DNA of 64,000 nt from Octopus sinensis. Its lineage: Eukaryota. Each line of letters starts with the position of its first letter. Within the stretch, counting starts at the first letter, position 1. Under the pieces are notes generated by a model that was given only the letters and a program-made list of their open reading frames with translations, was not told where the DNA came from and ran no database searches. Positions 7,278 through 63,158 of the stretch are shown in pieces. Position numbers and translations under genes: made by a program. The stretch covers positions 17,856,001 to 17,920,000 of the forward strand of contig NC_043023.1 in assembly GCF_006345805.1 (NCBI RefSeq). Direction: 5' to 3'.

Positions 7278-7351
7278 TTAGAAACTATAGTACATACCCC
7301 TTTTGCTAGGTTGAAGAGAATATAGTATATATATGTTATAGTATATATCTG

Positions 7352-37400: not shown

Positions 37401-39515
37401 TTGAAGGTTCGCCTTCAAATGTAGCTGTGTCTGCAGCTAAAATTATTGAAGGTTCGCCTTCAAATGTAGCTGTGTCTGCAGCTAAAATTATTGAAGGTTC
37501 GCCTTCAAATGTAGCTGTGTCTGCTGCTAAAATTATTGAAGGTTCGCCTTCAAATGTAGCTGTGTCTGCTGCTAAAATTATTGAAGGTTCGCCTTCAAAT
37601 GTAGCTGTGTCTGCTGCTAAAATTATTGAAGGTTCGCCTTCAAATGTAGCTGTGTCTGCTGCTAAAATTATTGAAGGTTCGCCTTCAAATGTAGCTGTGT
37701 CTGCTGCTAAAATTATTGAAGGTTCGCCTTCAAATGTAGCTGTGTCTGCTGCTAAAATTATTGAAGGTTCGCCTTCAAATGTAGCTGTGTCTGCAGCTAA
37801 AATTATTGAAGGTTCGCCTTCAAATGTAGCTGTGTCTGCTGCTAAAATTATTGAAGGTTCGCCTTCAAATGTAGCTGTGTCTGCTGCTAAATTTATTGAA
37901 GGTTCGCCTTCAAATGTAGCTGTGTCTGCTGCTAAAATTATTGAAGGTTCGCCTTCAAATGTAGCTGTGTCTGCTGCTAAAATTATTGAAGGTTCGCCTT
38001 CAAATGTAGCTGTGTCTGCTGCTAAATTTATTGAAGGTTCGCCTTCAAATGTAGCTGTGTCTGCTGCTAAAATTATCGAAGGTTCGCCTTCAAATGTAGC
38101 TGTGTCTGCTGCTAAAATTATTGAAGGTTCGCCTTCAAATGTAGCTGTGTCTGCAGCTAAATTATTGAAGGTTCGCCTTCAAATGTAGCTGTGTCTGCTG
38201 CTAAAATTATTGAAGGTTCGCCTTCAAATGTAGCTGTGTCTGCTGCTAAAATTATTGAAGGTTCGCCTTCAAATGTAGCTGTGTCTGCTGCTAAAATTAT
38301 TGAAGGTTCGCCTTCAATGTAGCTGTGTCTGCTGCTAAAATTATTGAAGGTTCGCCTTCAAATGTAGCTGTGTCTGCTGCTAAAATTATTGAAGGTTCGC
38401 CTTCAAATGTAGCTGTGTCTGCAGCTAAAATTATTGAAGGTTCGCCTTCAAATGTAGCTGTGTCTGCTGCTAAAATTATTGAAGGTTCGCCTTCAAATGT
38501 AGCTGTGTCTGCTGCTAAAATTATTGAAGGTTCGCCTTCAAATGTAGCTGTGTCTGCAGCTAAAATTATTGAAGGTTCGCCTTCAAATGTAGCTGTGTCT
38601 GCTGCTAAAATTATTGAAGGTTCGCCTTCAATGTAGCTGTGTCTGCAGCTAAATTATTGAAGGTTCGCCTTCAAATGTAGCTGTGTCTGCTGCTGAAATT
38701 ATGAAGGTTCGCCTTCAATGTAGCTGTGTCTGCTGCTAAAATTATTGAAGGTTCGCCTTCAAATGTAGCTGTGTCTGCTGCTAAAATTATTGAAGGTTCG
38801 CCTTCAAATGTAGCTGTGTCTGCTGCGCTAATTATGAAGGTTCGCCTTCAAATGTAGCTGTGTCTGCTGCTAAAATTATTGAAGTTCGCCTTCAAATGTA
38901 GCTGTGTCTGCTGCTAAAATTATTGAAGGTTCGCCTTCAAATGTAGCTGTGTCTGCAGCTAAAATTATTGAAGGTTCGCCTTCAAATGTACTGTGTCAGC
39001 TAAAATTATTGAAGGTTCGCCTTCAAATGTAGCTGTGTCTGCAGCTAAAATTATTGAAGGTTCGCCTTCAAATGTAGCTGTGTCTGCAGCTAAAGTTATT
39101 GAAGGTTCGCCTTCAATGTAGCTGTGTCTGCAGCTAAAATTATTGAAGGTTCGCCTTCAAGTAGCTGTGTCTGCTGCTAAAATTATGAAGGTTCGCCTTC
39201 AAATGTAGCTGTGTCTGCAGCTAAAATTATTGAAGGTTCGCCTTCAAATGTAGCTGTGTCTGCTGCTAAAATTATTGAAGGTTCGCCTTCAAATGTAGCT
39301 GTGTCTGCAGCTAAAATTATTGAAGGTTCGCCTTCAAATGTAGCTGTGTCTGCAGCTAAAATTATTGAAGGTTCGCCTTCAAATGTAGTTGTGTCTGCTG
39401 CTAAAATTATCGAAGGTTCGCCTTCAAATGTAGCTGTTTCTGCTGCTAAAGTTATCGAAGGTTCGCCTTCAAATGTAGCTGTGTCTGCAGCTAAAATTAT
39501 TGAAGGTTCGCCTTC
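7452..39515. repeat. 45-bp tandem satellite, about 32 kb, roughly 710 monomers
   Basis: Consensus AATGTAGCTGTGTCTGC(A/T)GCTAAAATTATTGAAGGTTCGCCTTCA repeated head-to-tail with no spacers. Stop-free in one frame on each strand (SAAKIIEGSPSNVAV and ILAADTATFEGEPSI). Copy number is length divided by 45. Confidence 0.99.
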
Positions 39516-40862
39516 GAAAGTGAAACAAGCTAAAACGTACAACTTCGCAGCCGCCGCTGGACGGAAGACGGAAGAGATTAAAATGGAGGACACAGAATAC
39601 AAAAAATACAAATATATGTTTGTAAGGGAGGAGAATAATATAAAAGCCACCCTCCCAGAAGATATTAAAAATGAAACACAAAGAAGGATAGTGATTTACA
39701 AATCATTTGTAATAAAAGAGAAAAAATCGAAGAAGTAACAAAAGAACAGGCAGAGAAGTGCCTGCAACCATATGGCAAGACATAGATTTCGTGACATGGG
39801 GCAAAAAGTACGCCACAATAATGGTCTATTTTAAGAGCGAGCAAATGGCATGAAAGCACTCGCTAACCCCATTTCAGGCTAGTGATATTGTTCTCTTGCT
39901 TTTTCTTATTTGGGGCAGAGGTCAGCCAAAATAAGAATCGAGGAAATACCTCCAGAAATCGAGGTAAAGTGGTTGCTTCCAGCCTTGCTAATAGGGCTGG
40001 AAGAAAAAATAAGTGTTATATAGAGATAACAAAGATCAGGATGGAAAACTGGAGAGGTCAAACTCTTCAAGTGACAGTACAGGCGGCCCCAAAGACATTG
40101 GAGGAGGTCGCAGAAAATATCAATTTCAGCAATGAAATAAATTTGCGCGTGGTGGTGGAGGCCCGAAAGCCTCGATGCTACGGATGTGGTGAGAAAGGCC
40201 ACATCCGTATAGACTGCTCCACCCGCAAGAAAGAAGAAGAAGAGAAAAAAAGGACGGAAGCAGAGGAGAAGAGGAAAAAAGAGACGGTGGAAGAGAAAAC
40301 AACAGAAGAAAATGCCTTCACACTGGTGAAGCAAAAAAAAAACACCAAAAGGAAAAAAATGAAGACTTAAACCTACCCACCCCATGCACAAGCAAAAAGA
40401 AAAATAACACACAGGGGAGAACATTTACCCCACCCAACCACGGTTCCCCACAAAAGAAAAGAAAGAAAAGACCCTCCCAACCCAACCCGAACAACCACTC
40501 CCACCCCTACCTCCCAGTGTCGAACAATTCCCTCCCCTCCCAAACTACTCCCCACCGTCCACCCCATCACCCCCACGAAGCCCAAAGAAAAAATGGAAGG
40601 TTTAGAGATGGTGTACATCTCAATAAACAAAGATAATGATAGGTTGGTGAAACTTATTGATGAAGTCCCAACAGCGGAAAAAATTCAAACTTACAGGGTA
40701 TTGCCCAAAAATGTAGAAGTGTGTAAGATCGACATGTTAAATTACAACATTATACATGAGGAATACCCAAAATACATTAAAGGTCCGCGTCTCGACTTGC
40801 ATGAGTCGTTGTATAAAGCGGACTTCCCCCCACGACCAATGGAAAAAAGGAAAACCAACTAA
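39516..40862 (+). pseudogene. ORF1 (gag-like, CCHC) of element 3, frameshifted, N-terminally in frame with the satellite
   Basis: KTYNFAAAAGRKTEEIKMED...ETQRRIVIYKSF...IPPEIEVKWL...NWRGQ...VVEARKPRCYGCGEKGHIRIDC (CX2CX4HX4C at 40176-40217). Homologous to the ORF1 at 57333-59040. Confidence 0.88.
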
Positions 40863-40872
40863 AAGGTAGGTG

Positions 40873-41991
40873 ATGGCTCGTATTCATGTAGGGTGCATAA
40901 ATGTGCGTCGCCTGGTGTCGAATTGGAAGCAAGGGCGCCTCCTAAACGACATCAGGTCACGGGATTTAGATGTTGTTGTTGCCACAGAAACCTGGTTAAA
41001 GGGGCCAAGAGATCCACTCCCGCTGTTCGGCGGTTACGAGAGAATTATCTCTCCGAGCCGTCTGTCCGGCGGAAGCGGGGTGTTGGTCCTGTGTAAAAAG
41101 AACCGGGTTTCTGAGAAAAAGTAGATTTTTTTCAGATCCAGAAGGGAGACTGGTCTTCGTTGATTTGACGTTCAGTAGTCGTAAGACAATCAGACTGGTT
41201 GCGGTTTACGAACCCCACAGTCAAGGGGAACAAAGTGATTATTTTCGGAACCTTGGAAAGTTTCTGAGTACATTGCATCCTTTAGTTGTTTTAGGAGACT
41301 TCAACACAGTCTACGATGTGCGGGTAGACTGTGAGGGCTCGCGAAGGAAAGGAAATGCTTGCTTCCAGGATCTACTAAGACGTTTCGAGCTGGTAGATCC
41401 ATATAGACTGGAACATTCGAACGCTCCATTGTGGACATGGTCAAACAGCGACGGATCTATCAAGTCGTACATAGACAGGATATTAATTAGAAAAGTAGAT
41501 AAGACACTAGCTAGGAGTCCACAGCTCCACATGGTCAGCTACAGTGACCACAAGATGGTCACCTTAGGCTAGACATAGATAGGACGAATAGAGGTCCTGG
41601 TTACTGGAAACTTAATACGTCCCTTTTGGCGATTAAGGATAAGGTTAATGATTCAGAGGGCTTTGACCGGAACAATAATTAACAACATATGGTGGTATGC
41701 CCTCAAGCGAGCCATCAGATATGAGTCCATTAGATATAGTATAGATCTAGTAGCTAGAGAAGCTAGAAGGGAATCAGCACTAGTTAAGGACTTAGAGCAA
41801 GCAATACGAACTGGCACGGCAGCCCAGGTGAAGGTCAAGAGACTGGTTTTAAACCAGCACCTCGAAGCCAAACACATGGGTTGCATTGTCAGGGCTAGAC
41901 AACGTGCAATGGGGAGCGAAGGAATTAATGCCGCGAGATGGGCCGCAGTGGTGGAAGCCCAACGTGGCAACGATGCCACAATTCGATCTTT
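40873..41991 (+). pseudogene. ORF2 N-terminus (APE-type endonuclease plus linker), disrupted and truncated before RT
   Basis: MARIHVGCINVR...ATETW...VVLGDFN...WTW...SYIDRIL...YSDHKMV...GPGYWKLN...WWYALKRAIR, with frameshifts and stops. Confidence 0.92.
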
Positions 41992-42476
41992 GAAATTAAT
42001 GAGCTCTATTCCTTCTTCAAAACGCAGAAAGTAAAATCAAGTGGGTTTTAAACTTAAAATGCAAAGAGCTACAAAATTCCCATACGAGACCCAGTCCCAT
42101 ATCCCTACACTTTGTCTAGTCCACTGGCCTCTTTAGGTACGCAAACAGCCTTAAGTTAAGGATGTCCTCGGCTAGATTTTAAGTCAGAATATCGAATGCA
42201 AGATTAAATAACACAAGGTGTCACTCAACTCGACGGCCTGCAGGTTCGGCCAATTTTTGAATAAATGATGAATGAAATTAAGAACATTTTAAATTTCTAA
42301 ATAATATATATCGTATATTCACCATCTGCAGATATACGGATTTCTATTTAATTCAGACAATCCCAAATGAGTAGAGAAGCAAGTGAATTCGCTTGAATCG
42401 ATCGAATGTAGTATTGAAATAGTTTATTTAAACTGGAAACTTGAAATATTTAATGCCATATAATTTTATCTACTGT

Positions 42477-42607
42477 AGGCACAAGACCCGAAATTTTGGA
42501 GGAAGGAGAGTCGATGAGATCGACCGTAGTACGAAACTGTTACTTAATTTGTCGACCCGAAAGGATAAAAAGCAAAGTCGACTTCGGCGGAATTTGAAGT
42601 AAGAACG
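42477..42607 (-). mobile_element. SINE-like repeat fragment (copy 1 of 3, carried within the duplication)
   Basis: AGGCACAAGACCCGAAATTTTGG...GTCGACCCGAAAGGAT...AAAGTCGACTTCGGCGGAATTTGAA resembles an abundant octopus tRNA-derived repeat (recognised from memory). Confidence 0.6.
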
Positions 42608-44775
42608 ATTAATACAAATTTAATATAAATCCATTAATCTGAAATAATACTCAGGAATAGTCTAACCCACTCTGTACAATCTAGGGTACTTTTCAGTTGA
42701 ACTGTAACAGACAGATCAGCTAAATCTTAAGCTTAAAGAATTTTGTAGAATTATAACTAATGTGTTTTTATTTCTAAAAAGGTATCGGGTTTATGATATC
42801 AACCTAAATTTTACTGATGACGTCTTTAATAAAAATAAGTTTCATAATACCGGACTATTGTACATGTTTCATTTACATAATATCAGATTCAGGCAATTTA
42901 AGCGGATCTCGTAATTATCTGCAGTTTAATTAGTCTAACAATATCACTTTTAATTGTAAACGTAATATAGACATGCAATAATTAACTGTCATTCTGTTAC
43001 TAAATCAGCTAATATCAATATAACTGTAACAATAAACATCTTAAATTTAGGAAATGATGTTGCGAAATGCGGCACCCGGGGGGCAGCCCAGCAAGCCAAT
43101 TTGATTAAAGTGGAGGAAGTAGGCATACCCGGCCGGATTATTTGCGTAATGTGGTTCTTCGTTGCCAGGTTCATTTCGACTCCTCACATGGCATCATTAC
43201 ACCGATGTCTTCGTTGACAAATCCACACTGTATGCAGTTCTTCGTCGTCTGACCTCACACCAACTGTTCACATCACCCAACTCTCATCTCTAACTCTTCC
43301 CATCGCCCAACTCTTATCCGATTTTTAATTACCCATAAGGGTCTAACATAGAGGGACAATACGCACATTTGGGGACAATTAACATATGAAAGAAGAAGAA
43401 GAAGAAGAAGATGAAAAATGAGCAAGTGCAGGACGATAAGATGTAGAAGAAGTGAAAGAAAAACAAGATTGGTAGGACAAAAACAACATCAAATCAGCAA
43501 CATTAAAACAATAAGTAGAGGAAGTAGAAGAAGAAAACGGAGACGAAGAATATGTAGATGGAGATAATAACTAATACGATGAAACGAAGGAAACGAAAAT
43601 GACGAAAAGAAGGAGAAGACGAAGAAAAAGAGGAGGAGTAAGAAGGAGAAGAGCAAGGAAGTGGAGGAGGAGGTAATGAAGTTGAAGTGGAAGTAGAAGT
43701 TAAAGAAGAAGAGGAAGGAGGTGAAAAATAAGTAGGAGAAGAAAAGAAGAAGAAAGGAAGAAGAATTAAGTACAAGAAGAATTTTATAAATGAGTTTTAT
43801 AAATGACGTAGTTCTAAATGTACAAATGCCATCGGTATTGAAGCATGTTAATTAGCGTAAACACCAGACATAATATCCATACCGAATGATAGACACAGGT
43901 GAATAGGGATTTGTATGTTTATAGTGATGATGAACATAGTGTTGATGCTGATGATGATGGTGGTGAAGTTTCTCTTGTCGATGATGATGAACATATAATA
44001 CCGTGTGAAAGGAAAATGACGAGAGTGAGCGAAATTACAAACATGGAAATATATCGGCAATGATATCCTATAAATGAAGATTGATTTAACTTACAGAGAT
44101 TTTAAATTGGTCAAATATTGGAAGGTTTCTGGTTGGATTTCTTTCAGGTTATTATGGTGCAAATACCTGGAACATGAAATTGAGTTAAGATGAAACTTTA
44201 TGGAACAGGTTTTTGGAAGTATATAACATATTCCAAGTAAGGAATTAAACTATGGAAATCATGAAGAGTTGATAACGGTTCTGTTGAAATTGATAATGAT
44301 GATGATGATGATGTTCAAGTGGGTGCAACTAACTGCGGTTGTCTATGGTAATGAATGAACTTGATGAACCTGACAATGTTGACGGCTGAGAGAAAGAATA
44401 GTGTTGGAGAGAATAGTCTCGGTAACAATGATGGGATCGAAGAACGTTTCGGGGACCACTACTCTGGGTTGATCATGAAGCAAGCAAGCGTGTGTTTATG
44501 CACGCACGTGTGTATGTAAGCATGTGTGTATGTATGTGTGTTTCTGTATGCGTGTGTGTGTTAACTCAATAGTTGAACATGAATAATGAAGAAGATTACA
44601 TCTTCATAATTTATTTGTCGAAGCATTTTCTTCATATTACATTCATTGGTTAATCAGCCCAAGATTTCCTCAGGATGGTAAAAATTATATGCTCGGATTT
44701 CAAATCTTTATTCCATTACGTTACATATGTGTGTGTGGCTGTGTGTATATATGTATGTATATGCATATGTATATA

Positions 44776-45584
44776 CGAGGGGATACACAAAAGTAACCGT
44801 AAATGTTCTCTGTAAGACAAACCCGTTGTAGTTCAGGTTTCCGTCGCCAAACTCCACTTGATGCGACTGTCAGGCATCAGTCAGCCAACCGGCGTTATCC
44901 GCTAGTGTTGTACTGCCGCGTAGTTCGTCTTTGTTTTGACGTGTTTCTGCTCAGTTCGTATGTTTTTTGCAATGGCTGGAACGAAGGAACATTGTGCTTC
45001 TGTGAAATTCTGTTTACTGCTGCTGAAAACTGCAGATGAAACAATTTTCATGCATCCCATCGCAAGGATAATGCAATGGGCAAAGCACAAGTTTATAAAT
45101 GGTTTTCACGATTTAGGAATGGTCACTTGTCGCTTGAAAACCAACCTCATTCATGACAACCGTCGACCTCCCGGCCATCATGAAAATTCATGATCTGATA
45201 CTGGAGGACCGTTACCGAGCAATTGATGAACTTGTTGACACGTCGGTTTTGCCCGGAGCTCCTGCCAATGAATTTTGTGCGAGGAATTGTGAATGAAAAG
45301 CGTTCCAGCAAAATCTATGCCTCGTTTGCTCACGGAATGTCAAAAATAGTCACGGCTGAATGCGTGTCGTGAGCTAGAAGAACGGTTATGAGGTAATCCG
45401 AATGTTTTTTCGAAGGTCATCACTGGTGACGAAAGCTGGTACTACGGAATTTGAAGATGTTGAAGTGAGGAAAGAAAACGATGGAGGCATTAAAAAGCAT
45501 CACTTCGGAATAGGTCCAACACTGATTCCAGTAGCTGAAAAGGCGCCTGGAACGATGCATTGATTAAAATGGAGAATAATTTGA
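44776..45584 (+). mobile_element. Internally deleted mariner element, right end lost
   Basis: TA-CGAGGGG left TIR. Transposase remnants SVKFCLLL, QVYKWFSRFRNG, KVITGDESWYYG, then a jump to the C-terminal FEDVE...RRLERCID*NGE. Confidence 0.88.
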
Positions 45585-46120
45585 TATTTAGGATGTCGGT
45601 TGGCAAGCTAAGACTTCATAGTTTTTATCTTACAGAATATGGCTTATTGTACTCTGTACCTTATATATCTTCACCTTTGCAACTATACTCCACATAACAA
45701 GGTGTTCTACACCCACAACCCTTTAATTACTAGATTTATTTTGATTGTGAAATGATGTTAGACTTGCTAATCATCAATTTGTAGGGAAGATTTGATAATT
45801 GTGTTGTTATCACTTTTCATTAGTCAAATATTGAATTGATTTGTCTTTGTTGGTCCATTTCGTTATACCTAGTTTTATTACATTTTCATGCTGTTATATA
45901 TCTATAATTATAGACATATCGTTATATGTCGTCACTAATTACAATAGTAATTATACATAAATGATGCTACCGATTCACATATTAATGATAATATAGAGCT
46001 CAGGCATTCAAATCAGATATTATTTCTGTGTGTTTGCATGTTTGTAATGATGAGTTTTCAGGTTGGCGCTGTTGATTAATTTTTGAATGATGGGCCATAT
46101 TTTGTGCCACAACCGATTGT

Positions 46121-46917
46121 GCTCAAGATGAAACGTTATGGAACAGCCATGTGGAAGTATATAACATATTTCGAGTAAGGAATTAGACTATGGAAATCAT
46201 GAAGTGTTGATTACAGTTCTGTTGAAATTGATAATGACGATGATGATGATGTTCAAGTGGGTGCAACTAACTGCGGTTGTCTTTGGTAATGAATAAAGTT
46301 GATGATGAACCTGACAATGTTGACGGCTGAGAGAAAGAATAGTGTTGCGGAGAATAGTCTCGGTAATGAGGATGGGAACAAAGAACGTTTCGGGGAACAC
46401 AATCCTGGGATGATCATGAAGCAAGCAAGCGTGTGTTTGTGCACGCACGTATGTATGTAAGCATGTGTGTATGTACGTGTGTTTCTGTATGCACATGTGT
46501 GTTAACTCAATAGTTGAACATGAAGAACGCAGAAGATTACATCTTCATAATTTATTTGTTGAAGCATTTTCTTCATATTACATTCATTGGTTAATCAGCC
46601 CAAGATTTCCTCAGGATGGTAAAAAGTATCTGCTTGGATTTCAAATCCCTATTCCATTACTTTACGTATGTGAGTGTGTGTGGCTGTGTGTATATATGTT
46701 TGTATATGCATATGTATATACGAGGGGATACACAAAAGTAACCGTAAATGTTCTCTGTAAGACAAACCCGTTGTAGTTCAGGTTTCCGTCGCTAAACTCC
46801 ACTTGATGCGAATGTCAGGCATCAGTCAGCCAACCGGCGTTATCCGTAGTGTCGTATTGCCGCGTAGTTCGTCTTTGTTTTGACGTGATTCTGCTCAGTT
46901 CGTATGTTTCTTGCAAT
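46121..46917. repeat. Partial duplication copy (matches 44185-44970 and 48910-49700), ending in a mariner left-end fragment at 46721-46917
   Basis: Direct similarity, including TATA-CGAGGGGATACACAAAAG at 46717. Confidence 0.88.
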
Positions 46918-47139
46918 TTTTGATTAAATTATGAATTAAATATAGAAAATTAAATATTTATAAATAATATATATCGTATATTCACCACCGACTGATTTAC
47001 GGATTTCTATTTAATTCAGACAATCCCAAAAGTGTAGAGAAGCAAGTGAATTCGCTTGAATCGATCGAAAATAGTATTGGAATATTATATTTAAACTGGA
47101 AACTTGAAATATTTAATGCCATATAACTTTTTCTACTGT

Positions 47140-47267
47140 ACGCAAAAGACTAGAAAGTTTGTAGGAAGGAGAGTCGATTAGATCGATCCTAGTAATTGTT
47201 ACTTAATTTATCGACCCCGAAAGGATGAAAGGCAAAGTCGACTTCGGCGGAATTTGAAGTCAGAACG
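47140..47267 (-). mobile_element. SINE-like repeat fragment (copy 2 of 3)
   Basis: Same repeat as 42477-42607. Confidence 0.6.
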
Positions 47268-49508
47268 ATTAATGCAATATAATACAAATCCTTTAATCTG
47301 AAATAATACTCAGGAAGAGTCGAACCCACTCTGTACAATCTAGGGTACTTTTCAGTTGAACTGTAACAGACAGATCAGCTAAATCTTAAGCTTAAAGAAT
47401 TTTGTAGAATTATAACTAATGTGTTTTTATTTCTAAAAAGGTATCCGGTTTATGATATCAACCAAAATTTTACCGATGACGTCTTTAATAAACGTAACTT
47501 TCATAATACCGGACTATGTTACACGTTTCATTTACGTAATTTCAGAGTCAGGCAATTTAAGCGGATCTCGTAATTATCTGCAGTTTAATTAGTCTAACAA
47601 TATCACTTTTAATTGTAAACGTAATATAGACATGCAATAATTAACTGTCATTCTGTTACTAAATCAGCTAATATCAATATAACTGTAACAATAAACATCT
47701 TAAATTTAGGAAATGATGTTGCGAATTACGGTACCCGGGGGGCAGCCCAGCAAGCCAATTTGATTAAAGTGGGGGAAGTAGGCATACCCGGCCGGATTAT
47801 TTGCGTAAAGTGGATCTTCGTTGCCCGGTTCATTTCGACTCCTCACATGTCATCATTACACCAATGTCTTCGTTGACAAATCCACACTGTATGCAGTTCT
47901 TCGTCGTCTGACCTCACCCAACTCTCATCTCTAACTCTTCCCATCGCCTAACTCTTATCCGATTTTTAATTACCCACAAGGGTCTAACATAGACGGACAA
48001 TATGCACATTTGGGGACAATTAACATATGGAAGAACAGAAGAAGAAGAAGAAGAAGAAGAAGAAGGGGAAGAAGAAGAAGAAGGGGAAGAAGAAGAGGAT
48101 GAAGAAGAAAAAGAAGAAGAAGAACAATAAGAAGAAGAAGAAGAAAATGGAGAAAGTGCAGGACGATAAGATGTGGAAGAAGAGAAAGTAAAACAAGAAT
48201 GGTAGGACAAAAACAACATCAAATCAACAACATTAAAACAATATTAGAGGAAGTAGAAGAAGAAAACGGAGACGAAGAATATGTATATGGAGATAATAAC
48301 TAATACGATGAAACGAAGGAAACGAAAATGACGAAAAGAAGAAGAAGACGAAGAAAAAGAGGAGGAGTAGGAAAAAGAATAGGAAGGAAGAGGAGAGGAG
48401 GTAATGAAGATGAAGTGGAAGTAGAAGTTAAAGAAGAAGAGAAAGAGGTGATAAATAAGTAGGAGAAGAAAAGAAGAAGAAAGGAAGAAGAATAAGTCCA
48501 AGAAGAATTTTATAAATGAGTTTTATAAATGATGTAGTTCTAAATGTACAAATGCCATCGGTATTGAAGCATGTTATTTAGCGTAAACACCAGACATAAT
48601 ATCCATAACGAATGATAGACACAGATGAATAGGGATTTGTATGTTCATAGTGATGATAAACATGGTGTTGATGCTGATGATGTTGGTGGTGAAGTTTCTC
48701 TTGTCGATGATGATGAACATATAATACCGTGTGAAAGGAAAATGACGAGAGTGAACGAAATTACAAACATGGAAATATATCGGCAATGATATACTATAAA
48801 TGAAGATTGATTTAACTTACAGATAATTTAAATTAGTCAAATATTGGAAGGTTTCTGGTTTGATTTCAGTGAGACCATTAGCCGACAAATCCCTGGAACA
48901 TAAAATTGAGTCAAGATGAAACTTTATGGAACATGTTTTTGGAAGTATATAACATATTTCGAGTAAGGAATTAGACTATGGAAATCATGAAGAGTTCATT
49001 ACGGTTCTGTTGAAATTGATAATGACGATGATGATGATGTTCAAGTGGGTGTAACTAACTGCGGTTGTCTATGGTAATGAATAAAGTTGATGATGAACCT
49101 GACAATGTTGACGGCTGAGAGAAAGAATAGTGTTGCGGAGAATAGTCTCGGTAATGATGATGGGAACGAAGAACGTTTCGGCAACCACTACCCTGGGATG
49201 ATCATCAAGCAAGCAAGCGTGTGTTTATGCACACACGTGTGTATGTAAGCATGTGTGTATGTATGTGTGTTTCTGTATGCGCGTGTGTGTTAACTCAATA
49301 GTTGAACATGAAGTACAAAGAATATTACATCTTCATAATTTATTTGTTGAGGCATTTTCTTCATATTACATTCATTGGTTAATCAGCCCAAGATTTCCTC
49401 AAGATGCCACAAAGTATCTGCTCGGATTTCAAATCCCTATTCCATTACGTTACATATGTGTGTGTGTGTGGCTCTGTATATATATGTATGTATATGCATA
49501 TGTATATA

Positions 49509-50398
49509 CGAGGGGATATACTAAAGTAACCGTAAATGTTCTCTGTAAGACCAACCCTTTGTAGTTCAGGTTTCCGTCGCTAAACTCCAATTGATGCGAC
49601 TGTCAGGCATCAGTCAGCCAACCGGCGTTATCCGCTAGTGTTGTACTGCCGGGTAGTTCTTCTTTGTTTTGACGTGATTCTGCTCAGTTCGTATGTTTCT
49701 TGCAATGGCTGGAACGAAGGAACATTGTGCTTCTGTGAAATTCTGTTTACTGCTGCTGAAAACTGCAGATGAAACAATTCTCATGCATCCCATCACAAGG
49801 ATGATGCAATGGGCAAAGCACAAGTTTATGAATGGTTTTCACGATTTAGCAATGGTCACTTGTCGCTTGAAAACCAACCTCATTCATGACAACCGTCGAC
49901 CTCCCAAACATCATGAAAATTCATGATCTGATCCTGGAGGACTGTCACTGAGCAATTGATGAACTTGTTGACATGTCAGTTTTGTCCTCGAGCTCCTGCC
50001 AATGAATTTTGTGTGAGGAATTGTGAATGAAACACGTTCCAGCAAAATCTGTTTCTCGTTTGCTCACGGAATGTCAAAAACTGTCATGGCTGAATGCGTG
50101 TCGTGAGGTAGAAGAACGGCTATGAGGTAATCTGAATGTTTTTTCGAAGGTCATCACTTGTGGCGAAAGCTGGTGCTACGGAATTTGAAGATGTTGAAGT
50201 GAGGAAAGAAAACGATGGGGGCGTTAAAAAGCATCACTTCGGAATAGGTCCAACACTGATTCCAGTAGCTGAAAAGGCGCCTGCAACGATGCATTGATTA
50301 AAATGGAGAATACTTTGAACACAATAAAAGTGTAAATATGTAAAACTAAGTCAATAATATATTATATCAAAATTACGTTTCTTTTGGGCAGCCCCTCG
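49509..50398 (+). mobile_element. Internally deleted mariner element with both TIRs (890 bp)
   Basis: TA|CGAGGGGATATACTAAAGTAACCGTAA ... TTACGTTTCTTTTGGGCAGCCCCTCG|TA: imperfect ~27-bp TIRs with TA TSD. Transposase N-terminus to KVITCGESWCYG is joined directly to the C-terminal ...RCID*NGEYFE. Confidence 0.9.
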
Positions 50399-50905
50399 TA
50401 TGTATGTACACACAAGCGGCTAAGGCCGAGCTTCCCTGGGATTATTAATACCTAAAATAGATATCATCTCATCATTTCCTGATATTTTGTGTAAACCGTT
50501 GTTTAAAAGATGCCAAGATGCAGAAAATCCTCAGTTTGTCTGTGAATGTTAATTCACTGAGAATTGTAAATAAACAGAACATAAGAAAAAACTAAAATAC
50601 ACTTTACTTTTATATTTATATTTTCTGTGGTAAAGGTTTTTATAACGTACGCTACACATTTTCAAAATATCTTTAAAGTAATTGTTTTTCTAACAAGTAA
50701 ATTTTACTATGACTAACGTAGTGCTTGAAGTATACAATGTTCTTATTTTGCCCTTGGTTGCAGACAAGGGATGAAGATCTCACATTTGATAATTAGGATG
50801 TCGGTTGGCAAGCTAAGACTTCATAGTTTTTATCTTACAGAATATGGCTTATTGTACACGGTACCTTATATATCTACGCCTTTGCAACTATACTCCACAT
50901 AACAT

Positions 50906-51050
50906 GAAGAAAAAGAAGAAGAAGAAGAAGAAGAAGAAGAAGAAGAAGAAGAAGATGAAGAGAAGAAGAAGAAGAAGAAGAAGAAGAAGAAGAAGAAGAA
51001 AAAGAAGAAGAAGAAGAAGAAAAAGAGGAAAAGAAGAAGAAAAAGAAGAA
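50906..51050. repeat. (GAA)n microsatellite
   Basis: Direct reading. Further GAA-rich tracts lie at about 43389-43780, 48038-48500 and 53300-53549. Confidence 0.97.
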
Positions 51051-52446
51051 AAAAATATTTATAATAATAATAATATTTTGGGCCACAACCGATTGTGCCC
51101 TTTGTTTATCCCCGCAAGAATCGATGCCAGATGAAGAAATAATTATAGTTATAAGTCATTTGCATTATTCGGTAGCTTCATAACAACGATGTTAACTAAG
51201 TCTAAAAGGGTTAGAGTTAATACATTTCGGAAACTACATAGAAGCCCCTTTGTCTAACTTCGGATCATTGACACCATTGGCCAATGAATGACTTTCTCAC
51301 TGAGACTACACCGCTGTCATATTGTCTCCCACGGCTTCGCCTGTAACCCTAGATTGAATGGAAGATGGGTGATACGCTGAGCCAAAGGGCAGCTGTGTTT
51401 GCGCCAACAAAGTATTCCCTTATTTGACGTAATCCCTATATTTAAAGGCTGTTCCATTGTCCACCGCCTGGTAACCTACCGAATAGTAGATACTCACACA
51501 AGATTTACTCATTCACACACACATTCATAGCCATCCTTAAATTGAGAGAGAGAATGTCTTGGCAACATATCTAATGCTTTTACTAATTGCTTCAGGTGCC
51601 TAAGTATTTCGAGTAGGCATAGATACGCTTTTATATCTCCAAACCTTACCCTAACCCAGCTGTCGCATCCAATAATTTACTGGTACACATTTACAGCTGA
51701 GTAGACTGGATCATTCCTGATCAACGTCCCAAACACCGAGATTAGTTCAAGAACTGAACCAATCACATTATGATCGTGCAGCGACATGCTAATCACTGTA
51801 TCATATCTTTCACACACACTGAGGTACTACAAGTAGAAACTGATACCAACAGCTCAAATGCTGGATCCACGCTCAAATCACATCCAGTGCTATGGCAGTT
51901 TTAACAGTCGAAACATATCAGCTCAGATTTAATCTATTGGCTGAGGCTAAAGTCACAGAGATGGGAAAATGATAGAATATCATCAAATGCCTGACAAGAA
52001 ATTCAAAGTTGTCTCTTGAATAACGTCCAACTTCTTTTCACGCAAAAACAATCTAAAAATCTAAGGATTCTGGCAGCCATAAAGAATTCTCTTTTGTTTT
52101 CTTTGGATCATGAAGGAAGTCTCTTTTGAAGAAAAACAGTACTAAAAGTTGATCCCGTGTATATCTAGGACTGAATTTAAAAGACAATTATTTTTCTTTT
52201 TAGAACCAGAACATATTTCACCCCTCAACAACTCCCACTTTTTGACGCTCAAGTAACCAAAGTAAGACCACTCTTTTTTTTAACATTCCTTCAGTAATAT
52301 TAACCGCTATGTTTAGTTCTTCATCCTCAGAACATCGGATTCCGGAATGTCCTCCATGTTCCTGTCTTCTTTCCGGCGGGAATTTATCTGTAACAACTTA
52401 AACGGAGCATTACCATCATCACTCTCACCCATATCACACAACCAGC

Positions 52447-53297
52447 GAAATTAATGATCTCTACTCCTTCTTCAAAACGCAGAAAGTAAAAACAATTGGG
52501 ATTTGAACTTAAAATACAAAGAACTAGAAAATTTCCATACGAGACCCAGTCCCACATCCCTACACTTTGTCTAGTCCACTGGCCTCTTTAAGTACGCAAA
52601 ACCTCGTACGTTAAGGACGTCCTCGGCTAGATTTTAAGTTAGAATACCGAATGCTAGATTAAATACCACAAGGTGTCACTCAACTCGACGGCCTGCAGGT
52701 TCGGCCAATTTTTGACTAAATTATGAATTAAAATTAAGAAAATTTAAAATTTCTAAATAATATATATCGTATATTCACCATCTGCAGATATACGGATTTC
52801 TATTTAATTCAGACAATCCCAAATGTGTAGAGAAGCAAGTGAATTCGCTTGAATCGATCGAATATAGTATTGAAATAGTTTATTTAAACTGGAAACTTGA
52901 AATATTTAATGCCATATAACTTTTTCTACTGTAGGCACAAGACCCGAAATTTTGGAGGAAGGAGAGTCGATTAGATCGATCCTAGTACGCAATTGTTACT
53001 TAATTTATCGACCCCGAAAGGATGAAGGCAATGTCGACTTCGGCGGAATTTGAAGTCAGAACGATTAATGCAATATAATACAAATCCTTTAATCTGAAAT
53101 AATACTCAGGAAGAGTCGAACCCACTCTGTACAATCTCGGGTACTTTTCAGTTGAACTGTAACAGCGAGATCAGCTAAATCATAAGCTTAAAGAATTTTG
53201 TAGAATTATAACTAATGTGTTTTTATTTCTAAAAATGTATCGGGTTTATGATATCACCCTAAATTTTACCGATGATGTCTTTAATAAAAATAAGTTT
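52447..53297. repeat. Local segmental duplication, copy C (matches 41992-42840)
   Basis: Begins GAAATTAATGATCTCTACTCCTTCTTCAAAACGCAG, versus GAAATTAATGAGCTCTATTCCTTCTTCAAAACGCAG at 41992. Contains SINE copy 3 at 52933-53063. Confidence 0.9.
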
Positions 53298-53857
53298 CAC
53301 GAAGAAAACGAAAATGATGAAAAGAAGAAGAAGACGATGACAGATGCAAAGTAGAAGATAAAAAAAGGAAAATGAATAAGAGTGGCAAAAAATATTAGTG
53401 TGCAGATAGTGCAAAAGGAACATCTAGAAGAAGAAGAAGAAGAAGATGACGAAGAAGCAGAAAAAGAAAAAGAAGAAGAAGAAAAAGAAACAGAAAAAGA
53501 CGTAGGAGAAGAGGAAGAAGAAGAAGAGGTAGTAGAAAAGAAGAAGAAAAATAATAATAATAATAATAATAATCAATTCTTTTTTATTGGCCACAAGGGC
53601 TGACACGCATGATTACATAAAGGGACAAGACAGGACGAAAGGTTACAAAGGGTTTTGCCGTTTTTTTTAAAAACATCGAGTAAAAATCTTTATAACAACT
53701 TATAAAATTCAACAATGAAAAACTCCCAAAAGGGGGAGACGTCTCGAAAGGTTCCTGGTGGAAAAAACCCTACAAAAGCCAACGGGAGCCTGGTCAAAAA
53801 AAAGGGGGTGTAGAGAGTCCCCCTTCTTCTCCTTTTACATTACCTTTTTCTTTGAAA

Positions 53858-56800
53858 TCACAGGCGAAACCTGAGAACTGGTCCATTTATACAGGCCAGT
53901 CTCGCACAATTCACCCACCTTTCATAAAACTTGCTATCGGACAGCACTTTCCTCTCTAACCTCATCTTCCTTTTCAAGTGAAACTTGAAAAAGTTGATGA
54001 GGCCTTGACCAAAGAGGAAAGTGTCTGTCTTTAGTCCTTTCAAACGAGTCCACCACACCACCTCTTTCGCCACAGCCACTAGGCACAAGAAAACGGCCTC
54101 GCCCTCCTTGTTAAAGGAGGTCGGCGGGGCAATCTTCACTATGGATTCGGCCGATAGTCGGATCCGTCCTACACGTGACAGTAGCTGTTCGACATAAACC
54201 CATATTTCAGCAATACTCGGGCACTGGACGAGTGCGTGCAGGACGGTTTCGTCGTCCTGGCAACACCTCGGGCAGGCCCGGCTGACGGCACTTCCGTGCC
54301 GGTAGAGTTTATCTCGAACAGGCAGAGCCCCTCGGTAGCACTGCCAAGCGAGAGACCTCTGGAAATTATCCATCGGCCCCGGCCCGAAAGTCCTCCCGAA
54401 CAGACCGCACAGTTCGTCATCTTCAACGCCTAGAGTTTCCCCGAGAACGTCGTCGCATTTTTCCTCCACTAACCCTCTATAGAACGCTAGAGTGGAGCTG
54501 TAACCGACCGCATTGCCCGCCTGGCGGAGGGCGGAGAGGGCTTGACGGCACTCGAGGTGCCAAGCGCCCTTTCTCGGTCTACGTTTGATCCAGGTCTGCA
54601 GCTCCGTCAAAGAGACGAGCTGCGGAAAATCGCGTCTGACAAAAGACGACCACACCTGTTCACCGTCTAGGAAGCGCTTGAGATGCCGCAGCCTGAGCGC
54701 ATGTCTGCGCAACAGCAACCACGGCATTCCAAGGCCTCCGTTCAGCGGTCGTTGACAGCAGATGGATCGCCTGACCAGTGGCACCTGACCCTTCCACAAA
54801 AAGTCGAAGAGCAGACGTACCAGCTTGGCCAACCAGCGGTCGGGACAAGGGACGACGGTCAAGCGGTAATAGATGACGGATGCGATGTACGCATTCGCCA
54901 CCTCCACTCGACCTTTCAGGGACAGCTTCCTCTCGGCCCATTTCTGGGTGAGACGTGCCACCCTGCTCGTCACCTCTTCCCAGTTCTTATCCACCTGGAG
55001 GTCCGGACCGAACCAGACCCCGAGCAGTTTAACGGGTCCGTCTGTCCAGCGCCCTACGACGCTGTTGGACGGCATGGGCTTGCCTCTCCAGGTGCCCAGT
55101 TGCAAGCCCACAGACTTTTCCGCGTTAATCTTTGCTCCTGTCACCGCTTCGTACTGGTTTAGCGTCTCGCCAATCAGGCCAATGTGCCTGTGGCTCGACA
55201 CCACCACGGTGACGTCGTCGGCATAGGCAGACACGCTGTTTCCGCCTCCTAGATCGCGCGGGATACCCCTCAAAGCCTCCAACTTGCGCAGTAATGGCTC
55301 GAGAGTCAAAATGTACAAGAGGGAGGAGAGAGGGCATCCTTGGCGGACCGAACGCGAGATGTCGAACGGTTCCGAAAGGTGACCGTTCACCCGTATCACC
55401 GAGCAGATGTTGCTGTATAAAGCAGCGATCCACCCGCGGAAGACTGGACCGAAGCCGGCTGCCCTGAGGACAGCTGCCAGGTACCGATGGTCGACCCTAT
55501 CGAAGGCTTTACTCTGATCCAAGTTGATCAAAGCCCCACCCGCGCCAGCGTCGTTACCCACCCTCTCTATGATGTAGCGCATGAGATGGAGGTTGTCGTG
55601 TATCGACCTGGTCGGCACGGCGCATGTCTGCGTCTTGCCGACCAGCTTGTCCACGACAAGCGCCAATCTCTTGGCTAGCACCTTGGCCAAAATCTTCAAC
55701 TCTGCATTGAGCAGAGTGATGGGCCGGAAATTCCCTATAACGTCCCCCTTGTTTGGGTCCTTCTTTAGCAAAGCCACCACCCCTCGACAGACAAAAGCAG
55801 GAATTCTCCCGTTTTGCTGCCAGTTGCAGTAGACGTTTGCCAACAGGTCCGCAAACAAGTCTGGCATTGAAAAGTAAAGCTCGTAGGGCAGACCATCCAA
55901 ACCCGGCGATCTACCTCTCGTGCAACTCTTCATCGCTTCCTGTACTTCCCAGGCAGATATCGGTCCTTCGCAGCACTCTGCCTCGCTGTCCGAGAGTTGC
56001 GGCAGTCCGTCCAGGTACACACCGAAGTCTGTACCGTTGGTGTCCGTTCCACCGCTCGTCCCAAACAGTTGAGCAAAGTGCCGCTGAAGCACCGTACACA
56101 TCTGCTTCGGTTGGGTAACCTCGCGCCCGTTCTGGTCCACCAAAGACCGAATGGTTGCTCTGTTGCCTCGCTTCGCCTCCGCCACGCGGGCCCATCGAGC
56201 GGCTCTAGTCCCCTCCCCGCTTAGCGAGCGTGCCTTAGCTCTGACAACGCAGCCCTCGTGTTTGGCGTCGAAGTGTTGGTCGAGGGCCAACCTTGCCGCC
56301 AACACGTCGGTCGCGATGCCAGTGTCAAGAGCCTCGTCTAGTTTCTTAACTAAATCCCGCTCTCTCTTCCTACGTTCAATAGCTAGAGTCTTACTATACC
56401 TAATCGACTCTACTCTAATTGCTCTCTTGAGGGCAAACCACCAGTTGTTGTTGATGATTGCCCCCGTGAGCGCCCGCTTAACTTGTAAACTAATCCGGTC
56501 TCTGTAAGCTTTGCACGCCGTTAACGACGCGTTCAGCTTCCAGTAGCCGGGTCCCTGTCTATGTAGCCTATCTAAGTCGACCGTACAGATCACTAATTTG
56601 TGGTCCGTATATTCGACTAGGTGGAATTGTGGACACCCTACGCTGTCCTTATCCGCTGGCCTACAAAACACTCTATCTAAGTACGATCTAGACGACCCGA
56701 TGCGGTTTGTCCAAGTCCACATTGGCACATTCGGGTTGTCTAGTCGAAACCTGTCGGACAGCTGAAAGCGGCCGAGTAGGTTGGCGAGGCTCTTGCACCC

Positions 56801-57292
56801 TCCCCCTCTCCTATCAGACGCTCCCCTGCCCACCCGATCGAAACGTTCGTCTAAGACAGCGTTCCAATCCCCAACTAGCACTAGAGTGCGTGACGTTCCC
56901 AGGAAAACTTCCAGACGTTTGAAATAATCCGACTGCCCTGCTCCTGTCGGAGCGTAGGCAGCCAGCAGTCTGAAAGCACCGCCGTCACTACCGTCGACGT
57001 CGAGGACCACCAACTTACCTTCCGGATCTAAGAAGACTGTCCTTATTTTCAGGTCCAGACCCTTCCGAAACAACACCGCAGTACCACCACCGCCCGCTCC
57101 CGGCCGACACGGAGATAGAAATATCTCGTATCCGCCGAAAAGGGCTGCGAGTTCCTGCGGGTGGGAGAGCCTGGTTTCACTGATGGCTGCTACATCCACA
57201 TCATGAAACCTCAGGTCGTTTAACAGGTGACCCTGTTTCCAAGGTGACCCGAGGCCTCTCACATTCAAGCAACCGATTCTAAGATTTGCCAT
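53858..57292 (-). CDS. ORF2p, 1144 aa: APE endonuclease, reverse transcriptase, C-terminal zinc finger
   Basis: Uninterrupted ORF. EN motifs: GCLNVRG, ISETR, LVGDWN, SYLDR, TDHKLV. RT motifs: SPGLDGL, FRPITLLN, DQSKAFDRV, VRQGCPLS, AYADD, LGVWF. Zinc finger: CPRCCQDDETVLHALVQC. Confidence 0.97.
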   Translation of the reverse strand: MANLRIGCLNVRGLGSPWKQGHLLNDLRFHDVDVAAISETRLSHPQELAALFGGYEIFLSPCRPGAGGGGTAVLFRKGLDLKIRTVFLDPEGKLVVLDVDGSDGGAFRLLAAYAPTGAGQSDYFKRLEVFLGTSRTLVLVGDWNAVLDERFDRVGRGASDRRGGGCKSLANLLGRFQLSDRFRLDNPNVPMWTWTNRIGSSRSYLDRVFCRPADKDSVGCPQFHLVEYTDHKLVICTVDLDRLHRQGPGYWKLNASLTACKAYRDRISLQVKRALTGAIINNNWWFALKRAIRVESIRYSKTLAIERRKRERDLVKKLDEALDTGIATDVLAARLALDQHFDAKHEGCVVRAKARSLSGEGTRAARWARVAEAKRGNRATIRSLVDQNGREVTQPKQMCTVLQRHFAQLFGTSGGTDTNGTDFGVYLDGLPQLSDSEAECCEGPISAWEVQEAMKSCTRGRSPGLDGLPYELYFSMPDLFADLLANVYCNWQQNGRIPAFVCRGVVALLKKDPNKGDVIGNFRPITLLNAELKILAKVLAKRLALVVDKLVGKTQTCAVPTRSIHDNLHLMRYIIERVGNDAGAGGALINLDQSKAFDRVDHRYLAAVLRAAGFGPVFRGWIAALYSNICSVIRVNGHLSEPFDISRSVRQGCPLSSLLYILTLEPLLRKLEALRGIPRDLGGGNSVSAYADDVTVVVSSHRHIGLIGETLNQYEAVTGAKINAEKSVGLQLGTWRGKPMPSNSVVGRWTDGPVKLLGVWFGPDLQVDKNWEEVTSRVARLTQKWAERKLSLKGRVEVANAYIASVIYYRLTVVPCPDRWLAKLVRLLFDFLWKGQVPLVRRSICCQRPLNGGLGMPWLLLRRHALRLRHLKRFLDGEQVWSSFVRRDFPQLVSLTELQTWIKRRPRKGAWHLECRQALSALRQAGNAVGYSSTLAFYRGLVEEKCDDVLGETLGVEDDELCGLFGRTFGPGPMDNFQRSLAWQCYRGALPVRDKLYRHGSAVSRACPRCCQDDETVLHALVQCPSIAEIWVYVEQLLSRVGRIRLSAESIVKIAPPTSFNKEGEAVFLCLVAVAKEVVWWTRLKGLKTDTFLFGQGLINFFKFHLKRKMRLERKVLSDSKFYERWVNCARLACINGPVLRFRL

Positions 57293-57332
57293 GTCTCAAA
57301 GTAGGGGAAAAAAAAAGGAGAAAAAAAAAGCT

Positions 57333-58118
57333 CTACTTACTGTTGTTGGTGGTGGGGGTGGCTCCCTTGTGCTTTTGCACGGGTGCTTCCACAATGTTTT
57401 TATAAAGTTTCTTCGAGAAACTTTTCCCTAGCGATCCCACATCGTTAGGGAATATTTGTTTGATTTCATCATATGTTTTTGCATTTATTTTATTGTGAGA
57501 ATGTGTGCTGGTGGTGTTTTGTGTTGGTATGATGAAATGTTATATTTGTACTAGTTTTGTTTTTTAAGTACTCACTAGTTTTTGGTTCTTTGTGTATTGA
57601 TGTAATTGTGTCTGTGTGGTTTGTGTGTGTGGCAGTGGCAGTAGTGGTGTCGAAAGTGTTGTTGTTGTTTGTTGTTGTGAGTGTGTGTTGTTGTTGTTGT
57701 TGTTGATGTTGGGAAGCACTATTTGTTCGTGCTTCCCCTGTAAATCTTTTTGTTTTTTCCTCCTTTTCTTTTTGGAGGCACTATACTCCATTCTCCTTTG
57801 TTGGAATCAGAGCTCGCACAATCCGACTCTTCATCCGGCAAAGGAATGGTTGAGGGGTCTGCTTCAGTAGCAGGACGAAAAGTTTCTGGTTCCCCGGTAT
57901 CGGTGGTGCCGCTGCTCCTGTTACTGTTGATGTCGCTGCTGTCGACCTTCGAGGTACTGGTGTCGGTGTTGGTTTGGTGGTGGTTGTCGGTGGTTGGTGG
58001 TGGTGTGTGGTTGTTGTTGGTGGAGTGGTGTTGTTCGTCTTGGTGCTGGTGTTGGTGATGGTGTTGGTGGTGTGGCAGCCTTTGGTTTTTCTTGCTGTTT
58101 TTGTTGTTTCTGTTTTGT

Positions 58119-58153
<35 letters not shown>

Positions 58154-59040
58154 GCTGCTGCCTCTTGCTATACTCCTCCATTCTCTTTTTTTGAATGGGG
58201 CAGTCCCTTTTTAGGTGGCTTTCGCTACTGCAGAGGAAACATTTTGGCTTTCGCCCCTCTACACATTTAGCCTGGTCCCATCCAGCAAGATGACAAAGTC
58301 AGGTATGGCATTGATGTTTTCCTGTTGGATCTGTACCAGCAGTTGAATACCCATGCCTGACCAGTTCTTTTCTCGTACCCTCCGAACATTCAGAATAGTG
58401 GCAGTGTCCTCTATGCCATAGAGGACAGCCGCCACTAGCCATGAGATTTTCTGTTCGGGGGGTATTGTGCTTATAGTTATTTTTTGTACCTTACCCGAGG
58501 TACGTCGGGACGAGGAACAAATGTTCATTTTGCAAGGCGAAATGGCGTTCGCCCTTGCAAGCTCCTCTGTTGGGAAGCGAACCTCCACGGTTCCAAATCG
58601 CTTCCCTCTTGTCACATAGCTCTTCTGGCCCCAAATGGGCTTCAGAGCCATCTCCAACTGTTGTGGTGTGGCGTTAAACAATCTTTTAGTTTTCTTTTCG
58701 AAGACTTTATAAAAGATTGTTCTTTTGTTTGTCTCTTGTGTGAGTTGTTGAGGTGTGTTGAGGAAAACACTGTTCCCCTCCTTTCTCAACAAATCTTGTG
58801 CCATTTTTATGTCCTCCATTGTAATTTCTACATCTTCCGAAATTTGCTTCGCAGCAGAAGCAAAATCGTTAGAAGCTTTTACAGTTTTTTGTTGGTTCTT
58901 GTCTGTGTTTGTGTCTGTTATAATTTTCTTTACCTCCCCCTTCGGTACAGCATCACTTGTTGAAGGCAGAGGGGGGAAATCAAGAGTGACGTCGAACGCG
59001 ACGTCCTGGCATGCATTCTCCTTTTGAACCGAGCGCGTGC
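57333..59040 (-). pseudogene. ORF1 (gag-like, CCHC) of element 4, with a few single-base frameshifts (may be sequencing errors)
   Basis: DFPPLPS...ASNDFASAAKQISEDVEITMEDIK...IPPEQKISWLV...KNWSG...EGRKPKCFLCSSESHLKRDC (CCHC at 58200-58241), a Q/T-rich tail, and the end ...TTNNSK*. Start not determined. Confidence 0.88.
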
Positions 59041-63118: not shown

Positions 63119-63158
63119 GTTTCAAAAGTTAGGGGAAAAAAAAAGGAGAAAAAAGGCT

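Follow-up and report, generated by a model that had tools for sequence, protein, structure and literature searches.

The 64,000 nucleotides of Octopus sinensis DNA analysed here (the window; RefSeq assembly GCF_006345805.1, contig NC_043023.1, positions 17,856,001 to 17,920,000 of the forward strand) contain a long array of a 45-bp satellite, which adjoins at its right-hand end a decayed copy of a long interspersed nuclear element (LINE) that we call copy C. We consider it very likely that the satellite arose by hyper-expansion of a coding minisatellite native to the LINE itself, that is, of a short tandem repeat in the N-terminal part of its first open reading frame (ORF1). Satellites are often suspected of being derived from transposable elements (TEs), the link usually consisting of a weak similarity between old sequences. 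The satellite's in-frame passage into a LINE ORF1, described in an earlier note on this DNA that was made from the letters alone, is real.

Sister copies of the LINE were sought with the conceptual ORF1 of copy C, which led to one protein, P0001. This protein then served as the query for an exhaustive phmmer search of 1.84 billion representatives, which returned P0002, P0003, P0007 and P0008. All sister proteins are from Octopus vulgaris, as are the six sister loci (L001 to L006), which belong to a single assembly of that species. Positions 39400-41993 of the window align with L002 8139-10700 at 80.0% identity over 2630 nt, and with L003 and L004 at 78.7% and 76.2%, respectively. The sisters, about 5.4 kb long, are full-length elements (L002 7770-13181 is 86.6% identical to L003 and 82.7% to L004), with a 5' untranslated region (UTR) of about 230 nt and an ORF1 start codon upstream of a set of 45-bp units. 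ORF2 is intact in L004 (1130 aa), and the ORF1 of L002 is open for 347 aa, from the units into the body, with a stop in the region of the CCHC knuckle. The units, each encoding 15 aa, lie in frame with ORF1 about 100-135 nt after the ATG and about 330 bp from the 5' end of the element. Codon-by-codon reading gave three units in L002, two in L003 and about five in L004; L006 and L001 have about one each, and L005 has none, its unit position being occupied by a 22-aa duplication. An independent call by Tandem Repeats Finder places 3.5 copies of a 45-bp repeat at L002 8097-8254, and the 15-aa units recur in the protein N-termini, two in P0003 and about five in P0008.

In the sisters, the units have the form xxEGSPSD(E/K)AV(K/I)(A/T)AK and are followed by VIEGSPSK...KTYNFAAAAGRKTEEIKME, and this downstream flank, ...EGSPSK..KTYNFAAAAGRKTEEIKME, is common to the units and the array. 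The N-terminus of P0002 reads ...KLK VAEGSHSDKAVITAK VAEGSPSDKDVITDK VVEGSPSDEAVKAAK VIEGSPSKGKQNDKTITYNFAAAAGRKTEEIKMEE..., for which the window counterpart is (IIEGSPSNVAVSAAK)n IIEGSPSKVKQAKTYNFAAAAGRKTEEIKMED; a representative sister unit is VIEGSPSDEAVKAAK, compared with IIEGSPSNVAVSAAK in the satellite. Since the units are located downstream of the ORF1 ATG, the 45-bp repeat is a coding minisatellite of the LINE ORF1 and not a 5'-UTR monomer array. A monomeric 5' end, one of the forms that the earlier note had envisaged for this LINE, does not agree with that position, and an array of the mouse type, built of 5'-UTR monomers, is ruled out because the units come after the ATG, in frame with ORF1. 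The other form envisaged, a LINE family with an expandable N-terminal repeat, is what the sisters display, with about one to five units in five of them and none in the sixth; the 5' ends of sister copies, to which the earlier note had pointed as the place to look for 45-bp units, do carry them, at the same site inside ORF1 in five of the six copies.

The similarity between the satellite and the ORF1 units is well beyond that expected by chance. The satellite consensus is GAAGGTTCGCCTTCAAATGTAGCTGTGTCTGC(A/T)GCTAAAATTATT, with the translation EGSPSNVAVSAAKII, and the monomer matches the ORF1 units of L002, L003 and L004 at 32-37 of 45 nt, compared with 28 of 45 for the best of 235,396 background positions. 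A 14-mer of the satellite, GAAGGTTCGCCTTC, has an exact match in L001, and only four matches with three or fewer mismatches were detected in 20 kb, all of them within a stretch of about 150 bp in the ORF1 N-terminus; no monomer-like sequence was found outside ORF1 in the sister elements or their flanks. The proposal that a 15-codon segment of ORF1 was tandemly amplified to yield a LINE-derived satellite is thereby upheld, with units of this degree of similarity situated immediately upstream of KTYNFAAAAGRKTEEIKME in the sisters. The same comparison bears on a quite different reading, according to which a 5'-truncated LINE inserted into, or beside, an unrelated older satellite, the open frame across the junction being a one-in-three coincidence. 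LINEs are as a rule truncated at the 5' end, the 5' UTR and the first ~33 codons of the sisters are missing from copy C, and the satellite is absent on the 3' side of copy C, all of which is in keeping with such an insertion. Nevertheless, monomer and sister ORF1 units are homologous by the margin over background given above, the array ends exactly where the repeat of the sisters ends, with the flank in common, and monomer-like sequence was not found in the sister flanks outside the element, so that we regard an insertion of this kind as hardly credible. A target-specific LINE residing in its target repeat, of the Tx1L/PTR-1 or R1/R2 type, was also considered and is ruled out, as there is no monomer 3' of copy C or in the flanks of the sisters.

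At the junction, the satellite frame NVAVSAAKIIEGSPS, the one open frame on the plus strand of the monomer, passes unbroken into ...SPSKVKQAKTYNFAAAAGRKTEEIKMEDTEY... and onward to ...SPSKVKQAKTYNFAAAAGRKTEEIKMEDTEYKKYKYMFVREENNIKATLPEDIKNETQRRIVIYKSFVIKEKKSKK*, ending at the stop codon at 39736-39738. In a multiple alignment, the last four monomers of the window pair unit-for-unit with the units of L002, and the downstream flank is the same in both. Homology to the LINE sisters already covers GTTCGCCTTC at 39506-39515, inside the last satellite unit; the alignment of copy C to L001 begins 10 nt within that monomer, and the alignments of L002 and L003 to the window begin about 115 nt within the array. 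The in-frame fusion follows from the monomer being itself ORF1 sequence, 15 codons long, and, judging from these alignments, the frame common to the array and ORF1 appears to be shared by descent rather than by chance. The claim that the array is in frame with ORF1 holds for the last ~7 monomers, to which the continuity is limited; in the array as a whole, about 14% of the monomers are 41-44 bp long and the longest stop-free stretch is 523 codons.

The comparison of individual units suggests the direction in which the sequence moved. Units at the same position in different elements agree at 41 of 45 nt (L002_u1 and L003_u1; L002_u3 and L003_u2), whereas units of the first and last types inside one element agree at 36 of 45, which argues that the master elements already had the repeat and passed it on by retrotransposition. 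L002_u1 and L002_u2 also agree at 41 of 45, and L003 has no counterpart of u2, which is indicative of a change in copy number by unit duplication within the LINE lineage. The satellite consensus is nearest to the 3'-most unit type (36/45 with L002_u3 and 33/45 with L003_u2, as opposed to 31-32/45 with the upstream types) and has in common with it the diagnostic codons GTG and GCA and a terminal ATT. The identity of the monomer to the 3'-most unit is 80%, and that of the adjoining LINE sequence is 80-83.5%; because the two are equal, the monomer is what would be expected of copy C's own terminal unit, whereas a satellite captured by the LINE would have given the reverse picture. Taken together, the inheritance of the repeat with the LINE and the equal divergence of monomer and flank indicate, for the window and the O. 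vulgaris copies compared, that the direction is from LINE to satellite.

The region that gave rise to these units is itself variable. A distant subfamily copy in L003 (about 17990-18700) has another N-terminal tandem repeat (KNDKQICEKSAKTDSE / KNKQTCEKSASE; KNxKQxCEKSA units), which sits upstream of NVAAAAGQK, in the same place as the 45-bp units. As L005, L006 and this distant copy exhibit differing repeat architectures at one and the same place, the ORF1 N-terminus of the LINE family can generally be described as a hypervariable, repeat-built, Ser-Pro-rich region, and turnover of N-terminal repeats seems to be general in these ORF1s.

The opposite course of events would be the capture of an older satellite into the 5' part of a LINE master element, by template switching or 5' transduction, followed by its spread at low copy number. 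Homology between monomer and units by itself gives no direction, and the comparison is confined to the window and O. vulgaris, which leaves such a capture some room. Against it, the units lie inside ORF1 after the ATG, in frame in every unit-bearing copy; the 41/45 agreement across elements exceeds the 36/45 within an element; monomer and flank are equally divergent; and distant subfamilies with other N-terminal repeats at the same place imply that the hypervariability belongs to the LINE. The array is moreover homogeneous, and hence young or homogenised. We accordingly consider a captured satellite very unlikely. The features by which a satellite expanded from a TE-internal repeat is recognised are all found when the window is compared with the sisters: homology beyond chance, a low and variable copy number in dispersed copies, a long homogenised array, and a TE-to-satellite direction.

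Tandem Repeats Finder reports 715 copies for the array, with 96% matches and 1% indels. A single site of the monomer is dimorphic, about half of all monomers having GCA and half GCT (50:50 A/T), and the two variants are arranged along the array as long runs and recurring block patterns. The monomer is open in one minus-strand frame as well (FEGEPSIILAADTAT), and the same is observed for the sister units, e.g. on the minus strand of L002 7829-8290. In a census of anchor-to-anchor intervals, 538 of 676 measured 45 bp and about 95 (~14%) measured 41-44 bp, the short monomers having mostly lost one base in an A-run. Substitutions in the array, with the dimorphic site left out, fall on the three codon positions as 29/87/24, without a third-position excess, and the array is therefore under no coding constraint. 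Examined as a protein-coding repeat, it likewise fails, both because frameshifting indels occur in about 14% of the monomers and because substitutions are not concentrated at third positions. Inside the array, a 670-bp sequence recurs exactly at an offset of 7054 bp, and a 510-bp sequence does so at 2916 bp; these multi-kilobase block duplications fit unequal exchange. An edge test along the array revealed no divergence gradient of the monomers toward the junction. A word-indexed search with five satellite units as the query found no match to the satellite peptide among 5.8 billion predicted proteins, and the monomer was not found in JGI metagenome contigs.

A run of exactly 100 N lies directly to the left of the array, which implies that the contig begins inside the array and that 715 units is a lower bound. 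On the far side of the gap, positions 6635-7278 contain a short interspersed repeat that is 97-100% identical to copies at L001 and L002 of O. vulgaris.

Several points weigh against an origin of the satellite from copy C. The gap hides the left end of the array, and the part of the LINE expected upstream of it (the 5' UTR and ~33 codons) is not seen. Of the 1-bp indels found in the array and copy C, many are in homopolymers and may be errors of a long-read assembly, so that the copy number and the broken frame are both less certain than they look. The linkage of monomer and LINE, furthermore, is read from one array, within a 64-kb window. Finally, the evidence of the window fits in-situ growth no better than a scenario in which the array originated elsewhere, at a different copy of the family or as a dispersed satellite, and homologous recombination via copy C's own units brought the two together; the 3' end of copy C and the left end of the array are rearranged or hidden, as this scenario would allow. 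Such a joining requires an extra event, and the divergence of the monomer from L002_u3 matches that of copy C from L002, as if the monomer were copy C's own unit, which makes recombination, in our estimation, quite unlikely. The same gap and indels raise the question of an assembly artefact, either a mis-join or a read collapse that was inflated: directly behind the 100 N, the contig sets in within the array, and the ~14% of monomers with homopolymer-type 1-bp deletions are typical of noisy long reads. A random mis-join, however, would not have hit precisely the point at which, in independent sisters, the homologous repeat gives way to its flank, and the variant patterns and block duplications resemble those of a real array; an artefact therefore appears highly improbable.

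If the satellite did expand from the LINE's own minisatellite, the process would have started from one retrotransposed copy, copy C, now dead and 3'-truncated, with minisatellite units in its ORF1. The unit adjoining the ORF1 body was presumably amplified first, by replication slippage, and later growth may have proceeded through the unequal exchange of blocks of several monomers between sister chromatids or homologues, until a position that holds about one to five units in the sisters came to hold at least 715. The likely cause of this growth is that selection on the length of the ORF1 protein was lifted after the copy had lost its function. The array is not being preserved as coding sequence and most likely serves the element in no way.

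Coordinates of the satellite array, copy C and associated features in the window
Feature	Position	Strand	Basis or remark
100-N assembly gap, abutting the left edge of the array	7352-7451	.	run of exactly 100 N
45-bp satellite, ~715 units	7452-39515	+	Tandem Repeats Finder; monomer census; unit homology; block duplications
Junction ORF, 175 aa: last ~7 monomers and ORF1 N-terminal segment	39211-39738	+	program-made ORF list
Last satellite unit	39471-39515	+	corresponds in position to the sisters' 3'-most ORF1 unit (L002 8196-8240)
ORF1 N-terminal segment KVKQAKTYNFAAAAGRKTEEIK, from the repeat to the conserved Met	39516-39582	+	holds the true homologue of the NDFASAAK / SFAAVVK motifs of other elements in the window
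Decayed ORF1 body of copy C, with several frameshifts and stops	39583-40370	+	comparison with sister ORF1
Pro-rich ORF1 tail and inter-ORF region of copy C	40371-40872	+	
ORF2 remnant of copy C: APE endonuclease and start of linker	40873-41992	+	domain scan, sister alignment
ASNDFASAAKQISED in element A	58830-58875	-	homologous to TYNFAAAAGRKTEE of copy C, not to the monomer

Copy C itself extends over 39516-41992 on the plus strand. Its ORF1 retains a CCHC knuckle pattern (CYGCGEKGHIRIDC) at about 40176-40217. Relative to an intact sister ORF1, frame-breaking indels are found at 39726, 39771, 39834/39837, 39900 and 40017, among others; the ORF2 part is frameshifted at 41126, 41565 and 41636, and stops are present at 39851, 40368 and 41122. 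With both ORFs broken in this way, copy C is dead. Its 3' end is cut short at 41992, which corresponds to position 10700 of L002 and to about residue 380 of ORF2, and an unrelated repeat begins there. A block of about 4.7 kb, present two to three times at 91-93% identity within 42251-53299 (42251-45584, 46914-50318 and 52447-53299), starts right where copy C is cut. The repaired ORF2 fragment of copy C gave no protein match at a cut-off of 1e-20, which was too strict. The proteins of copy C are colinear with those of element A, another LINE of the window, at an identity of only 30-60%, and there is no nucleotide-level match between the two.

The earlier note had placed the source of the monomer in a different part of ORF1, and here the comparisons lead elsewhere. 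It had aligned the monomer with ASNDFASAAKQISED of element A and counted 27 identities in 42 nt; a recount gives 21/36 ungapped, or 26/42 with one 3-nt gap. Agreement of at least 21/36 occurs at 223 of 101,706 background positions when all rotations of the monomer are allowed, which gives an expectation of about 0.16 for a target of that size, not yet corrected for the inspection of three or four elements. At the protein level, the BLOSUM62 score is 23 (shuffle p=0.17), and on the basis of the nucleotide background and the protein shuffle the alignment is rejected as chance-level. The 31 nt of the monomer outside EGSPS show no significant similarity to the 5' regions of element A, copy C, copy D (a further copy in the window) and the first sister (p=0.18-0.74). 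The motifs FAAAA (also NFAAAAGRK) and SFAAVVK, taken as further instances of the monomer's motif, are homologous to NDFASAAK and to each other, and not to the monomer. In copy C, the counterpart of these motifs is at 39540-39580, downstream of the junction, and is not the source of the monomer. Instead of ASNDFASAAK / NFAAAA, the amplified segment is the EGSPS-D-E-A-V-K-A-A-K-V-I unit, just upstream of that motif.

The expansion of a tandem repeat internal to a TE into a satellite is an established process, and the closest known case in mechanism is PisTR-A. This satellite of pea originated from a hypervariable tandem-repeat region in the 3' UTR of Ogre long terminal repeat (LTR) retrotransposons (as summarised in PMC9659126). 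As in PisTR-A, a native, short repeat of variable copy number in a dispersed retroelement has given rise to a long homogenised array; in contrast to PisTR-A, the source in octopus is a LINE, the repeat is protein-coding, being the in-frame N-terminus of ORF1, and the array is still on its parent copy at the homologous position. Other satellites related to LINEs include PROsat and Pvc20 (L1 ORF2), the common cetacean satellite (L1 3' end), chicken HinfI (CR1) and Drosophila 18HT (HeT-A/TART), all treated in the same review (PMC9659126). The octopus monomer resembles them in sharing sequence with a non-LTR retrotransposon; in all five, however, the TE fragment is part of a longer monomer, and none of them comes from ORF1 or from a TE-internal minisatellite. 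The term 'ORF1' occurs nowhere in the review (PMC9659126).

With respect to the repeat as a component of the LINE, the nearest parallel is the length polymorphism region (LPR) of L1 ORF1 in mouse and rat, in which in-frame units of 66 bp and 42 bp are present in one to three copies (PMC3600994). In both systems, tandem units are found in frame within the N-terminal part of the LINE ORF1, and lineages differ in how many there are and how they are arranged. Sequence homology is absent, however, and the LPR is part of the coiled coil, in contrast to the octopus units, which are Ser-Pro/Ala-Lys-rich and probably disordered; unlike the octopus repeat, the LPR has not been reported as the source of a satellite. 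The analysis of the octopus units can also be set beside the 5' UTR of mouse L1 elements. This region is composed of tandem A, Tf or Gf monomers, promoter units of about 200 bp that are located upstream of ORF1. In both cases, tandem units occur in varying number close to the 5' end of the LINE, but the octopus units are 45 bp long and lie downstream of the ORF1 start codon. A literature search on octopus satellites or on this LINE family yielded nothing relevant, the octopus LINE study that was found covering RTE elements only.

The locus is thus very likely a case of the birth of a satellite from a TE in which a coding minisatellite of ORF1 is the source and the array is still attached to the parent LINE. 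The intermediates are all visible, from the low-copy minisatellite in the ORF1 of sister elements to at least 715 copies in a dead copy, joined at the homologous boundary. Provided that this reading is correct, a protein-coding repeat of a LINE, and not just UTRs, LTRs or terminal inverted repeats, can seed a satellite, and the window offers a concrete locus at which to consider how a minisatellite becomes a satellite once it is released from selection. To our knowledge, cephalopod satellites have barely been described, and this would be the first characterised TE-to-satellite case in these animals. It also documents a hypervariable, repeat-built ORF1 N-terminus in an invertebrate LINE, in parallel to the LPR of mouse L1. 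A more far-reaching possibility is that satellite 'seeds' are dispersed over the whole genome by the LINE family, each retrotransposed copy bringing a 45-bp minisatellite that may expand independently, and that the ORF1-derived satellite is one of the major satellites of octopus, possibly heterochromatic or centromere-associated, with several arrays born at different copies; we view this extension as speculative and rather unlikely.

The domain content of the LINE family fits the L1 superfamily, on the strength of predicted domains that are general to the superfamily and not specific to Tx1. Exo_endo_phos (APE), RVT_1 and zf-RVT were detected in the ORF2 of element A and of L004, and copy C keeps only the APE part. 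A CX2CX4HX4C pattern is visible in ORF1, where zf-CCHC scores 19.2 and 18.7 bits, below the Pfam cut-off of 20.8 bits. Element A, on the minus strand, has an intact ORF2 of 1144 aa (53858-57292) with APE, reverse transcriptase and zf-RVT domains. Look-ups of the exact protein product gave no recorded entry for this ORF2 or for the junction ORF.

At the L005 locus of O. vulgaris, a full-length element is present at 2828-8125, and the gene model of P0006 (annotated as 'C-type lectin domain-containing'; L005 3001-20088, OX597814.1), the first ~100 aa of which are the ORF1 N-terminus of this LINE family, then splices to a lectin domain. P0006 represents either a chimeric transcript driven from the 5' end of the LINE or an annotation artefact.

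Further LINE sequences are found toward both ends of the window. Element A and a second copy, element B, occupy 53556-64000 on the minus strand; they belong to another LINE family, are 97.4% identical over 4.6 kb and are arranged head-to-tail with a period of 5840 bp. The (ATT)n tail of element B (about 59396-59415) abuts the 5' end of element A directly, and the ORF2 of element B is split. The tail of element A is followed by a (TTC)n microsatellite at 53426-53548. At the opposite end, positions 5-1040 (plus strand) contain the 3' part of another LINE ORF2, with 53-60% amino acid identity to element A, and the ORF1 of copy D, which carries SFAAVVK, lies at 1346-2220 (plus strand), within about 300 bp of that ORF2 part, in a second head-to-tail arrangement of LINEs.

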